Positions 4,817 to 10,800 of a DNA stretch of 64,000 nt are shown piece after piece. Below the pieces are notes generated by a model. It was not told the origin of the DNA, searched no databases, and worked only from the letters and a program-made list of their open reading frames with translations. Both the position numbers and the translations under genes were made by a program. Origin of the DNA: Salpingoeca rosetta. Its lineage: Eukaryota; Protista; Choanoflagellata. Every line of letters starts with the position of its first letter. Within the stretch, counting starts at the first letter, position 1. The stretch lies in assembly GCA_033442325.1 (NCBI GenBank), contig JAWQFM010000003.1, positions 1 through 64,000 of the forward strand, given 5' to 3'.

Positions 4817-7800
4817 CTAGATCACTTCTTGCAAGTTGTCCACACAGAAGGTCTCCGTGAAGTTGTAGCAGTTGAGCAGGCCACACCACGAGCAGTTGAT
4901 CTGCAGGCCAAACGACCATAGGTAAGTAACAAGCCGTCAAAAGCGAGAGGCAAAACAAACAGCCACTTGAGTGGCAGGAAGGAACTTACGGGTAGGCAAC
5001 AAACACTTCTTCCACACATACACACGTACATCCATCCATCCATCCATCCATCCATCCATCCATCCATACATACATACATACACATACACAAGGCACACAC
5101 GAACCGTTCTCGTTGCCAACAGAATCGAAAGTACAGTGATGAGGGCGACGAGCCCGGGAAGGGCAATGAGGATCAAGGTCCGTTTGCGAGCCTGTGTGGG
5201 TACGTTCGGGAATCGGCGCAAGTCAGAAGGCAACAAATCGCAACCAAGGGCAGGGCACTCATGGGCGCACTACAGCCACAGCAAAGCATGCACTCCAAAT
5301 TGCAGCACACGTACCGCGTCCCACTTGCCAAACGTGATGTAAGGCAAGAAGACAATCGAGCTGAGGATGCCAAATGCAAACCCACCCACTGCAATCAGAA
5401 ACAACGCGATCAACAACGTTATTGGCGACGGGTGTAATTCAAAGGGCAAGGGCATGGGGTTGACAAGCATTGGGTTGTGGCACGCCCTGGCGAAGCGAGA
5501 AGTGGAAACGAGAGCAACAAGACGTACAGTGGGACCAGTTGTCAATGTACGGGAGAAGGCCGACGGCGAGTGCAACAATGGCGATGAGAAACAGCTTCAA
5601 AAACTCCTTCTTCGGGCTCTCGAGCAACTGCCAAGACTGGAACAGCTCCACAAAAAGACAGCCCAGCAAGCCATACAGGGCGGGAGAGGCCCCAGTTGAC
5701 ACCTGTGGCAAGATGGGTGCAAGCCACCACAGGAAAAAAAAAAAAAAAAAAACAAGTGCAAGTCAGCATTTGCTTGTGTCGTCAAAGTCAGAACGACAAT
5801 GACACATGATGACAGTCACAATGCACGAAGTAGACAAACGTGAAGCATTCCACCGTTCACACCCTTGTTACACTCATTGAGAATGGTGGGGGGGGGCAAG
5901 GTCACGGTCAGCACGCCGTTTCTCCCGGCAGGCTCACCTGGTAGGGTGTAAAGTTCGCTGACACAAGGTAGCCGCCGATTCCAGCGAGCATGTAAATGAA
6001 GAACATGCGAAGCCAGCCGGCCAGCTGCTCACACCGAAACCCAAGAGAAGACGGGCAGTGAGCGGGTGTTGCATGCTCGACTTGTGGCAGAGAGTGTGAC
6101 ACGAAATACAATTACACACCGCGAGGCGCACCTTCTCGATCTCAACGGCGAAGCTGTGTTGCATCAACACAACGAAGAAGAGATGCACAAAGCCTAATTC
6201 CCCAACATGTGGGTTGCAAGTTCAGGTGTGGTGCATTCATTGTTGGGAGAGGGAAAGTTATGGCAGTCAGCAAGGAGTTCAAGCTGAAGTGACACAAAGT
6301 GGAATCACAAGTGGCGTGCTGCTGGTGCTTCGTATTGTAAGCGCGGCACTCACCGACGTGAAGGAACATGGCCAGGTACAGGCGATACCACTGGTCGGGC
6401 TGTCAGAGAACACGAGTGCCACGCGACAACACAAGGTAATGATGAGAAGGTACCGGTCCACGCACACGCGCGCTTGTGTGTGTGTGTGTGTGTGTGTGTG
6501 TGTGTGTGTGTGTGTGTGTGTGTGTGTGTGTGTGTGTGTGTGTGTGTGTGCGCGCGCAAGTGACCATGGCCGACTCAGTGTTCACCAGACAAGGCACACC
6601 TACCCTATCTTCGTGAAGGAAATTCACCAAGCCGCAAACACTCTGCAAGCAGGAGACCTGATGACCAAGGACACACAGACAGACACACACACACACACAC
6701 ACAACGCATACACAAACCGGGTAAGTGACTGAAGGCTGTTTGCGAAGGAGACAGACAAATTAATACACGATTCAGGAAACAGGAATACAATCAAGACATA
6801 CTGCACATTTCTCCTGGTCACAAGCAAATGTGAACAACATGGGCGAATGGCTGATGGACAGAGTGAGCGACCCGCACCTGGGAGCAGAGTTCTGCATCTG
6901 GGTGGTAGTGGCCCTCCACAAACTCGCAGTACTGCTGGCTTTGAATTGAACAGTCACCAGCAAGGGAAGTGCAACAGGGACGGGCGCTGATGGTACAGGA
7001 GCAGCTTGGGTCCTGCGCTGATTCGGCGGGCTGGTACTCACAGTCTGGATTGTTGCAACAACACAAAACGGTCACTACCTTATGGACAGCCAACGAGCCA
7101 CAACACCAGCAGACAAGAAACACACACATGCACGCACAGATAGACAGACACAGACAGACAGACAGGCAGATACAGACAGACAGAGAGGCATAAACGACAG
7201 GCAGATACAAGCACATATACGCACACGCAGCACACGGCTTACTTGGATACGTGGCAGAAGCGTTGTTGCGATAATCCTTGCAGCATTGAGGGCCACCACA
7301 GATTTTGCCAGGCTGTGCATACAACAAGTGAAAGCGTCCAGGCCCGCGAGGCCGCAGTGAGTGGAGAAAATGCAAGCTATCATTGTGGTTCCTGCCCGAG
7401 GATGAACAAGAAAAGAGACGCAAATTCGTAGCGGAAGCGTTGGGACGCACGCACAATGAAAGTCCGGAAACCCGTGCAGTCATCCGCTGAGGAAGAAAAG
7501 CAATTGCCGTCGGTCGCGCCTTGCTCAACGCAGCATCCGAAATCCTGCAGGCGTGAATGCAGTTGAGCGATGCTAACGACTCCACCAGAAACGCGCAATA
7601 GACATATGCACAGAGCTCTGAAAAAGCCGTGCATACAACAACAACACACACGCACATACCTGTTCTGCTTCTGCGATGGGCTCAACGACCTCCGTGTAGA
7701 TGCGATCGTCGCGCCGCATGCAGGGCGTGAATTTGGCGCCCATGAGCACGAGCGCCGTCGGTGATGGGCCTGAACGCACACACGTCGACAAATCAAACAG

Positions 7801-10800
7801 GCTTGTCAACGGCGATGGGTGCACAGCATGTTGTGCGCAGACCCTCGCAAAAACGAAGAGAGGGGGGGGGAAGGGGCGCAGAGCAAACGCCGTCCTTCCT
7901 CATCCCGCGTTCCTCATCAAGCAAACCCACCAATCCAGAAGTTGGCCTCCTGCTGATAGGATGCCTGAACCGGGGTCCCATCAGGCCCATCAACAGATGC
8001 TGTTTTTGTTTGGGACTGCGCACACGTAGGTGGTCAAAAAGACAACGGAGTCGTATTGTGAGCAAGCTCACGGCCGCCACGACTGCAATTTTGTTGACAC
8101 ACACATACATACCTACGCCCACACCCACACCCACACCCCCTCCCACACCCACCCACACACACCCACACCCACACCCACACACCCACACACACACATTGTT
8201 GAACACGAACGCGCACGCGCACCTCGATGCCAATGGGAGCGAGGCCATAGACGAGGACAGCAATGATCATGACGGCAATCTAGAGGCAATTCATCAGCGG
8301 AAGTAGCGGAGAATCGCGATGCATGTGAGCACAATGTCAACGCAGACAGTATGCACGCCACCTCTCCTTCAGATTTTGCTGGTCCAACCTGGCAAAACGA
8401 CATGTAATAAGTGAAGAAGGGCCGGTGCTCGCGAATGGACGCCACTTGCTTCTGCAGGCGGGTATTGAAAGTATCAGCAGCATCTGTTGGTTTCATGCGG
8501 CTCTTCGCCCTTGCACGGCGCTTCCTGTCCGTTCCAGTCCCGCTGGCCGCCGGTGCGTTCGCCTTCGCAGCAGCAGCGCCTGTGGTGGGCCGTGCCCGTG
8601 ATGTGGATGACGCTTCTGCCGTCGTTGTTGCGCGCGGGCGGCGACCAGCCGGCTGTGCCCGGCGTGGATCAACAGCCACATCGCCAGTCGCAAGGGCTTG
8701 CTTCTTACGTGGCTCACGCTGCTGCGGCCGCTGCTGCTGCTGCTGACGAGGATGATGATGAGGAGATGGGGGTGGAAGCGGAGACGTAGACACAGACAGA
8801 CAGACAGACACAGACAGACACAGACACAGACACAGACACACAGACACAGACACAGACACAGACACACAGACACACAGACACACACACACACACACACACA
8901 CACAAAACAGACACCGACAGCCCAGTTAGCGCGGGCAATAATGTGAGGGTACATGGTACACGGGTGGATGGAGCAACGCAGGAAACACAGACGCTACCAG
9001 CAATTACAGCAATGCGAGCAGGGCGGGCAATGTGAACCCACCGGGGGACGCCTGGCGGCAGCGGCTCCTGCGGTGGTCACGGCGCGGGCGCGGGGGGCGG
9101 ACGCGCCTGCCTTTGTCTGGCCGCAGGCAAGTGTCAGTTGTTTTAAGGCAATGGTGCGTTTGTATGTATGTATGTATGTATGTATGTATGTATGTATGTA
9201 TGTATGTATGTATGTATGTATGTATGTATGTATGTATGTATGTATGTATGTATGTATGGATGTATGGATGTATGGATGTATGTCTGTATGTATGTATGTA
9301 TGTATGTATGTATGTATGTATGTTTGTATGTATGTATGTTTGTGCGTTTGTGTGGAAGTGTGCATGTCTCACCGGCTGAGGGCGCGTGGCGGATGGCTGT
9401 GCAACTTGCCTGACAATGAAAATACAGCACGTTGTGTTCGTGTGAGCTGGTGTGGTGATGGGCAAGGAAGTCACCGCAACCATCACATGTCCGCTCAAGC
9501 GAAAGTGTGAGCAAACGGCAGGAAACGTACAGCCAAACAAGCACTCACTTGGCTGCCTGCGCAGCAGCAAGGCCGGCGCGTCCACGCGAGGGATCGGCAC
9601 CAAACTGGATCAGGCCTGCACCGCCAACCGCTCATCCGCACGCGTGAGCAAACTACACACGCAAAGTGCACTGCAGCCAAAACACAAACATCTGCTTATT
9701 GATGGGTGCAGCTCAAAAGTGCAAGCGTGTGCATCGCTGCTTACCTGGGCTGCTACGGTTCTTGTCCTGCTCATGGGACTGAGGGGGCGAGTGGTGCCAC
9801 GAAGCAAGTTGAAACAACTGTCAGTTGCACCAAAGCACGCGTGATGGGCTTCAACATCGTCCGTATGGACCCGGGACAACACAGAAGCGCGCGCGCGTAC
9901 ACACACACACACGCACACGCACGCACACACACACATACACACACACACACACACACACACACACACACACACACACACACACGTACGCGCACACACACAC
10001 GTGCGCGCGCAAACACCAAGACACGTGACATGCGTGCGTGACAATACCGCTGATCCTGGTGGGGAGGTGGAGGACACAGCACGCATCTGCAGTTGCTCAG
10101 ACTGCATGGACGAGCGCGAGGGCTGTGACAGCAGATGGCCAAGATGGCACAATGACGTGAGAGCATGACACACACGTTGGGTGTGGGACCGAAAACACAC
10201 ACACACACACACACACACACACACACACACACACACACACACACACACACACACACACACACACACACACAGGGAGACATCGAGGCATGCAGTCACAGAG
10301 AGGCAGACATTTTGACATGGACACATAAGTTGGGGGTGGGACATACAGCCTGGGAGCGCCGGCGAGCCTTCTTGATGGTGTTGCGCAGTGCACCAGCAAC
10401 AAGGCGGCTCACAGGCATCAAGTCGTCCGGCTCAGGCTCCTTCACGGAAAACACGCGCTGCAAACACACACACACACATACACACAAAATGGATAGTATG
10501 CGTAAGCAAGCGCTGTGATTCAGGTCTGTGAGTGTCTGTGCAAGGCAAAAATCTGATTCATACCCGCAGGCTGCTGCGCTTCGACGCGTTGTCTGGCAGG
10601 TTGTCGTATGGGTGTTCGCTCTCTGCATTGGGAAAGGAAGGCATGAGGGTTGGAGCAAGGGTAGGTGCCTACAGAGGGTGCATGCAGCACATGCGTGAGA
10701 CACGGGTACAGCAACATACAGCAAGCGTCAAACATACGTTCCGTGACCGCCGAGGAATCCGACAAATCCTCCTCAAGGACTGTAGACGTGCACACGAACA

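Follow-up and report, generated by a model that had tools for sequence, protein, structure and literature searches.

The proteins called iRhoms have been described as a group that "are only found in metazoans", with a long N-terminus, an IRHD and an invariant Pro as their hallmarks (Zettl et al., PMC3149277), and likewise as proteins "conserved in metazoans" that carry a GPx motif (Dulloo et al., PMC6451368). A change of Ala to Pro directly before the catalytic Ser inactivates the rhomboids Rhomboid-1, RHBDL2 and AarA (PMC3149277). Here we report on an iRhom-type gene of the choanoflagellate Salpingoeca rosetta, PTSG_02140, which lies on the minus strand of positions 1 to 64,000 of contig JAWQFM010000003.1 (assembly GCA_033442325.1); this stretch of 64,000 nucleotides is referred to below as the window, and its numbering is used throughout. 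The encoded protein of 1498 amino acids is listed by NCBI as an unnamed "hypothetical protein". A first reading of the window, made from its letters without database searches (the sequence-only reading), had claimed an iRhom that still has its catalytic Ser and His, and had called it a possible missing link between active rhomboids and animal pseudoproteases.

As judged from sequence comparison, PTSG_02140 and its relatives show that the supposedly animal-only iRhom family predates animals. IRHD-bearing rhomboids occur across Holozoa, with a catalytic set that is complete in Ichthyosporea and variously degraded in choanoflagellates, sponges and other animals, and a textbook pseudoenzyme thereby becomes a case with a testable order of events. 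A full-text literature search returned no description of non-animal iRhoms; the 2007 classification paper and subscription reviews lay outside this search, and a prior mention is possible.

Likeness to animal iRhoms and phylogenetic placement

A phmmer search of the PDB with PTSG_02140 returned human iRhom2 (8snl, 9o58) and iRhom1 (9q7y, 9xy4) at E values of 1e-99 to 1e-105, and no chain other than iRhom1 or iRhom2 below E 0.001. The alignments cover the juxtamembrane HRPFFTY segment, the first transmembrane helix (TM1), the IRHD, TM2 to TM7 and the C-terminal Cys tail. The named database neighbours are entries for "inactive rhomboid protein 1", with 35-40% identity over ~480 residues. Nine of the ten Cys columns common to two vertebrate iRhoms are present in PTSG_02140, the iRhom2 row of this comparison representing the distal half of the IRHD only. 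The Pfam Rhomboid domain PF01694 is found at residues 1296-1432 with 111 bits, and ~1070 residues lie upstream of TM1 as a long, disordered cytoplasmic N-terminus, in which the (W/F)FGVS motif is the only feature common with animal iRhoms.

The predicted fold gives the same picture. An AlphaFold2 model of residues 1040-1498, built from a 49-sequence alignment, has a mean pLDDT of 92.1 and a pTM of 0.88, with the rhomboid core at high confidence. The top Foldseek matches are iRhom2 and iRhom1 chains from ADAM17 complexes (TMq 0.81-0.89, E 1e-34 to 1e-37), the best superposition being that on 8snl_B (TMq 0.89); GlpG scores far lower, at a TMq of ~0.25 over the rhomboid core only. Residues 399-430 of the model form the TM7 helix, which is followed by the CSWC..NC..FC tail, whose Cys columns vary little or not at all among the 49 sequences. 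The full iRhom architecture that the sequence-only reading had recognized is thus upheld by the PDB alignments from TM1 to the C-terminal tail, by the Cys columns and by the predicted fold.

The phylogeny was computed by maximum likelihood with 72 rows under LG+C20, and supports are given as UFboot/SH-aLRT. All IRHD-bearing proteins form one clade against the active rhomboids that have no IRHD (99/97), and PTSG_02140 falls inside it, as the sequence-only reading had supposed, and not outside the iRhoms. Other choanoflagellates, Capsaspora and ichthyosporeans also have homologs. PTSG_02140 pairs with a protein of Choanoeca flexa (100/99) within an orthogroup of five members (100/92), and a wider group of 13 rows (98/90) joins this orthogroup to a subclade with GxSG plus His, which includes an S. 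rosetta paralog on contig 21, and to a third subclade with a further paralog on contig 3. The 13-row group includes three S. rosetta paralogs and C. flexa, its remaining rows coming from transcriptome or metagenome assemblies. The group is sister to the canonical animal iRhoms, which are themselves monophyletic at 100/99; support for this sister relationship is moderate in the careful tree (93/66), and SH-aLRT reaches 98-99 in two quick trees. A large choanoflagellate clade with GA(D/N)P plus His (S. rosetta PTSG_07830, Monosiga brevicollis 27089, Didymoeca, Choanoeca) is separate, and forcing it together with the 13-row group, a group named after the tree had been seen, is rejected (difference in log-likelihood, ΔlnL, 68.4; p-AU 0.0001).

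Measured against the hallmarks of iRhoms, PTSG_02140 has the long N-terminus, the IRHD between TM1 and TM2, TM7 with the C-terminal Cys motif and the phylogenetic placement; the Pro of GPx, the loss of Ser and/or His and the metazoan-only distribution are not found. Since the GPx feature and the lack of Ser and/or His both fail, we file the protein as an iRhom-type (IRHD-bearing) rhomboid and not as a canonical iRhom. We describe it as a choanoflagellate co-ortholog of animal iRhoms with a seven-TM rhomboid fold.

Active-site residues among IRHD-bearing rhomboids

Both residues at issue are encoded by one exon, 5702..5528 on the minus strand. The codon of Ser1365 (5685..5687) falls in the catalytic-serine column, within the G-A-S-P of V-S-T-G-A-S-P; the exon terminates in CAC plus one base, which places the codon of His1417 (5529..5531, DNWSH) in the catalytic-histidine column of TM6, with GGFAFG on the next exon. 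In the HMMER alignment, G-A-S-P lies over the G-P-A-G of human iRhom2, with Ser over Ala, and DNWSH is matched with DNIAH; most rhomboids that have no IRHD show GASG, GCSG or GSSG in the four G-A-S-P columns of a profile alignment of 354 relatives. The residue before the Ser column of PTSG_02140 is Ala, and its Pro sits one place after. A one-residue shift of the alignment that would put this Pro under the animal Pro was considered and ruled out, as the distance from G-A-S-P to the Gly of ..ALYG is equally long in both families. The TM6 GxxxG motif is present. TM2 reads H1308..H1313..V1317, that is, both His of HxxxxHxxxN are present and Val1317 replaces the Asn. This Asn gives an oxyanion-hole side chain in GlpG and Rhomboid-1.

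The RNA evidence consists of raw stranded reads from two RNA-seq runs and of two transcript contigs with introns removed. No differing letters are reported in the RNA reads for the coding sequence of PTSG_02140, the Ser and His codons included; the sole RNA differences are at 4426, 4472 and 4474, all in the 3' untranslated region (UTR). Read depth is ~20 over the exon that carries both residues. Given that no RNA variants occur at 5685-5687 or 5529-5531, the Ser and His codons are real in the mRNA.

The codon positions given by the sequence-only reading were therefore exact, and both alignments agree with what it had said of the residues: the GPx Pro is absent, Ser and His stand in the catalytic columns, Pro follows Ser, and Val takes the place of the TM2 Asn. 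Its emphasis on the His did not hold. The TM6 His is nearly universal in iRhoms, human ones included (DNIAH in iRhom2), and having kept it is therefore no distinction. The Ser is a distinction only in part, being absent from bilaterian iRhoms (GPAG) but present in those of cnidarians and the sponge Oscarella (GPSG plus His).

The relatives display a range of states at these columns. The ichthyosporeans Creolimax (CFRG2740) and Amoebidium have a complete HxxxxHxxxN, GSSG and His, and Corallochytrium (Clim_evm21s13) has HxxxxHxxxN, GASA and His. Capsaspora reads GGTG. Other sponges show GGSP/Asn, GPCG/Asn and GASG/His. The Asn of TM2 is present in Creolimax, Amoebidium and Corallochytrium, and absent in the tabulated choanoflagellate, Capsaspora and animal members. 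In C. flexa, the closest ortholog, the state is GGSP/His, with both residues present. On the sequence evidence, the Creolimax and Amoebidium proteins are the clearest evidence for an origin of the IRHD within a protease that was still active, and they give the strongest support to the earlier claim that the IRHD is older than the loss of the dyad. The apparent order of events would be a gain of the IRHD, then loss of the Asn, then insertion of the Pro and then loss of the Ser. The idea of a missing link stands insofar as pre-animal IRHD rhomboids with Ser and His do exist; PTSG_02140 is nevertheless neither unique nor the best preserved of them, as the contig 21 paralog (GASG/His) and the ichthyosporean proteins indicate, and is one of several intermediate states among IRHD rhomboids.

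The S. rosetta genome itself (the assembly searched, 55.4 Mb in 68 contigs, also contains PTSG_07830) holds at least five IRHD paralogs. The one on the minus strand of contig 21 (C21:231000-241000) has GASG and a TM6 His (YVDNYSH), with TM2 reading HAGGIHLFVV and its Asn lost; it is a candidate, and the best one in this genome, for residual protease activity of an IRHD protein. The paralog on the minus strand of contig 3 (C3:2139000-2148000) has G-P-S-P and Gln for the TM6 His. PTSG_07830 is GANP/His. A paralog on the plus strand of contig 14 (C14:1628000-1637000) has WIDNFAH in TM6, and its TM4 exon was not recovered by tblastn.

Could PTSG_02140 be a working intramembrane serine protease with an IRHD, whose Ser1365-His1417 dyad cleaves transmembrane substrates, possibly in addition to a scaffold role? 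Its Ser and His stand in the exact catalytic columns, both His of TM2 and the GxxxG of TM6 are retained, the iRhom-defining Pro before Ser is absent, and the rhomboid core is predicted at high confidence; the C. flexa ortholog also has Ser and His, and a sister subclade has the canonical GxSG plus His. Yet conservation argues the other way. Among the five orthogroup members, PTSG_02140 and C. flexa have the His, and the other three have lost it, with Q, N and N in its column; four have the Ser, and one has Thr instead. Ser and His are therefore not conserved together. As the Ser is retained even where the His is gone, a structural role fits better than catalysis. Across the 13 rows of the wider group, the catalytic-serine column is occupied by Ser in 10, by Thr in 2 and by Leu in 1, and the His is present in 8. 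The change of Asn to Val would delete an oxyanion-hole side chain known from GlpG and Rhomboid-1. A Pro after Ser is confined, in this data set, to IRHD-bearing proteins or to short, closely similar fragments, where it is accompanied by D, N or T in the Ser column; clearly IRHD-less rhomboids have G, A or S there. We regard an active protease as unlikely.

An ADAM17-like protease and the proposed role

The sequence-only reading had suggested a search of the genome for ADAM17-like partners, and one was found. On the plus strand of contig 16 (C16:956632-960411), a single-exon gene encodes a type-I membrane M12B metalloprotease of 1260 amino acids with a propeptide, a furin-like RARRAR site, an intact HEVGHNWGSSHD zinc motif, a Cys-rich stalk and one TM helix at 833-853. 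In the PDB it comes closest to human ADAM17 (E 1e-68), with ADAM10 giving a weaker match (1e-36). From these features, the gene product is classed as a putative ADAM17-like sheddase in a choanoflagellate.

A complex was predicted for residues 1040-1498 of PTSG_02140 and residues 341-870 of this protease, together with three controls. The predicted complex scores 0.62 (runs 0.61-0.63), and the best of the three controls scores 0.01; when the score was calibrated, 51 of 78 solved complexes and 2 of 108 mismatched pairs attained the mark. At least 26% of contacts are common to the runs, and pLDDT for the partner is 68 or higher. In the confident predicted contacts, the protease TM helix (831-857) meets iRhom TM1 (1072-1093) and iRhom residues 1140-1141, 1285-1287 and 1303-1307. 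In the mouse, the sinecure mutation hits TM1 of iRhom and blocks maturation of ADAM17 (PMC6451368).

We lean, with no great margin of confidence, towards a role as a non-catalytic, client-binding scaffold. PTSG_02140 would then be non-catalytic like animal iRhoms, and its TM1 and IRHD would hold a single-pass membrane client. The most plausible client would be the S. rosetta ADAM17-like metalloprotease, the trafficking or activity of which may thereby be controlled. Ser1365 and His1417 would be ancestral residues, passed on by an IRHD-bearing ancestor that was proteolytic, as Ichthyosporea still appear to be from their residues, and would probably have been retained for the packing of TM4 against TM6 rather than for catalysis. 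Two supports of the active site are already lost, with Val in place of the TM2 Asn and Pro in place of the Gly after Ser. It is important to note that the data establish the gene structure of PTSG_02140, its expression, its residues, its family placement and its fold, as well as the presence of an ADAM17-like gene, and that we infer from them which client PTSG_02140 has, what it does in the cell and that it does not catalyse.

Several points weigh against this role. The Ser is conserved in 10 of the 13 rows, which could, at the level of sequence, reflect function. Both residues of the dyad are present, and a Pro in the first turn of the helix need not distort TM4; the Pro that is inactivating in experiments precedes the Ser rather than following it (PMC3149277). 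PTSG_02140 gave no match to the iRhom N-terminal family PF12595, nor did the S. rosetta genome give one to the membrane-proximal domain of ADAM17, PF16698. The complex score may reflect a solved human complex that the model has learnt; it expresses likeness, not binding, and cannot pick out the binding partner among the five S. rosetta paralogs.

This last point also bears on the possibility that PTSG_02140 is non-catalytic and serves clients other than the ADAM17-like protease, for example by directing other membrane proteins to endoplasmic-reticulum-associated degradation or to trafficking, in the way that EGF-family ligands are handled by Drosophila iRhom. With at least five IRHD paralogs, S. 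rosetta probably splits clients among them, the complex score does not single out the family member that binds, and iRhoms with ADAM17-independent roles have been described (PMC3149277, PMC8913617). Against other clients stand the predicted interface between TM1 and the TM helix of the ADAM17-like protein, which scores far above the controls, and the position of PTSG_02140 in the group closest to the ADAM17-binding animal iRhoms. We judge other clients to be an improbable, though serious, alternative to the ADAM17-like one.

A bolder proposal is that the iRhom-ADAM17 module as such is pre-animal, that S. rosetta preserves a graded series of stages on the way to a pseudoenzyme (GASG/His, then GASP/His, then GPSP/Gln or GANP) and that PTSG_02140 is a weakly or conditionally active hybrid of protease and scaffold, which would cleave some clients and also act as a chaperone of the ADAM17-like protease; we hold this to be quite doubtful. 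S. rosetta is an experimentally used model choanoflagellate and has an ADAM17-like protease, and whether regulated shedding by an iRhom-ADAM17 pair is older than animal cell signalling is therefore directly testable.

Gene structure and comparison with known systems

The whole coding sequence of PTSG_02140 extends over 4817..14731 on the minus strand in more than 20 exons, as given by a tblastn map of the NCBI protein on the window and by stranded RNA coverage, and the span of 5340-8450 proposed by the sequence-only reading was too short at both ends. The iRhom motifs on this strand yield a single open reading frame once spliced, and the C-terminal 523 residues of the spliced model are 100% identical to NCBI PTSG_02140 of S. 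rosetta, an identity that confirms a choanoflagellate and hence non-animal source. The gene region has short GT-AG introns with many (CA)n repeats. RNA-supported junctions are 4900/5105, 5191/5315, 5388/5528, 5702/5938, 6024/6132, 6657/6878 and 7044/7243, and further 7312/7455, 7544/7660, 7769/7931 and 8279/8389. RNA-seq upheld all but three of the core junctions that had been deduced from sequence, and left the codons unchanged in the mRNA. It sets the start of the large IRHD exon at 7044, not ~7078, and that of the following exon at 6657, which adds the residues VSCLQ.

From the N-terminus onwards, the parts of the protein, all on the minus strand, map as follows. A cytoplasmic exon with the FFGVSDDDQLARWE motif, followed by an acidic run, lies at 11116..11466 (tblastn map). 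In a pairwise BLASTP comparison this exon matches the WFGVS motif of Callorhinchus iRhom1 at E 0.016, and a motif of the FFGVSDDDQLARWE type is also present in S. rosetta PTSG_07830 and Didymoeca. The juxtamembrane segment and TM1, REHRPFFTYYMSFCQ and IAVMIIAVLVYGLAPIGIE, are placed at ~8389-8714 and 8223-8279 by RNA junctions and alignment to iRhom2. The luminal Cys-rich IRHD is divided over six exons with RNA-supported junctions (7931-8015, 7660-7769, 7455-7544, 7243-7312, 6878-7044 and 6604-6657), and its span of 6604..8015 runs from NFWIGP..LMGAKFTPCMRRD via GCC, RPCC and LCSQVSC to VCGL. TM2, with PDQWYRLYLAMFLHVG and FVHLFFV, occupies 6354-6399 and 6132-6193 (junction 6024/6132 RNA-supported), and TM3, LAGWLRMFFIYMLAGIGGYLVSANFTPYQ, occupies 5938..6024 (RNA junctions). 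The exon at 5528..5702 encodes TM4, TM5 and the start of TM6, from VSTGASPALYG via LFVELFQSWQ to YIDNWSH, its junctions 5388/5528 and 5702/5938 being seen in both reads and contigs. The remainder of TM6, LGGFAFG with the GxxxG motif, and the FLPYITFGKWD segment follow at 5315..5388 (RNA junctions and iRhom2 alignment), and TM7 and the luminal C-terminal tail INCSWCGLLNCYNFTETFC reach the stop codon through 5105-5191 and 4817-4900 (RNA junctions and alignment to the iRhom2 C-terminus).

The RNA contigs depart from the NCBI model at one N-terminal junction, which lies in a disordered region (around 8712-8742 and 9042-9081). The contig pieces stop at 8714, and read depth points to an exon of ~36 nucleotides at 9081-9116; the NCBI model instead has an exon at 9042-9116 with an acceptor at 8742, and no canonical GT-AG solution fits both model and RNA. 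This conflict could reflect an alternative isoform or a small annotation error, and the rhomboid part is unaffected. Beyond this junction, no support was found for an annotation or assembly artefact, a pseudogene or animal contamination, a reading that is hardly credible at all given an intact frame, strand-specific expression across several independent studies, a product 100% identical to the S. rosetta reference protein and orthologs in other choanoflagellates; pseudogene and animal origin are both ruled out by the RNA evidence and the identity to PTSG_02140.

Downstream of the coding sequence, the transcript contig stops near 4705, probably at the polyA site. Further on, RNA depth at 4400-4600 is 45-60, above that at the iRhom gene's own 3' end, ~80 reads per run share a loose end at 4482, and 6-39% of reads carry minority letters at 4426, 4472 and 4474. 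A second transcript or a same-strand neighbour gene probably adjoins the iRhom 3' UTR. Long (CA)n/(GT)n repeats or tetranucleotide microsatellites of the TGGA or TACA type are present in many introns of PTSG_02140 (5013-5093, 6459-6563, 8780-8900, 9150-9340, 9900-10000, 10200-10290 and 11850-12060); these repeats were excluded from read placement.

Compared with known systems, PTSG_02140 is most like vertebrate iRhom1/RHBDF1 and iRhom2/RHBDF2. It has in common with them seven TM helices, the IRHD between TM1 and TM2, TM7 with the Cys tail, the LFVELFQSW, DNxxH and FLPYITFG motifs, and a long cytoplasmic N-terminus with (W/F)FGVS. It differs from them in having G-A-S-P where they have G-P-A-G, with Ser present and Pro after rather than before it, in an N-terminus that is much longer (~1070 residues) and gives no PF12595 match, and in its non-animal host. 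With active secretase-type rhomboids, such as Drosophila Rhomboid-1, RHBDL2 and Escherichia coli GlpG, it shares the six-TM core, the Ser on TM4 and the His and GxxxG on TM6, whereas these enzymes have GxSG and the TM2 Asn and do not have the IRHD, the TM7 Cys tail or the long N-terminus.

The other S. rosetta paralogs (those on contigs 21, 3 and 14, and PTSG_07830) share its architecture and its genome but differ in their active-site states, PTSG_07830 belonging to a separate, older clade with D or N at the Ser column. The iRhoms of cnidarians and homoscleromorph sponges (Sanderia, Rhopilema, Porites and Oscarella) resemble PTSG_02140 in having Ser and the TM6 His (GPSG ... DNFAH) and in having lost the TM2 Asn, but they carry the canonical Pro before Ser and cluster with bilaterian iRhoms at 100/99. 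Finally, the IRHD rhomboids of Creolimax, Amoebidium and Corallochytrium share with it the IRHD core motifs NFWIGP/GAKxxPCMR, GCC, RPCC and LCxxxxC, most Cys and the rhomboid core, whereas they retain the TM2 Asn and branch outside the choanoflagellate-plus-animal groups.

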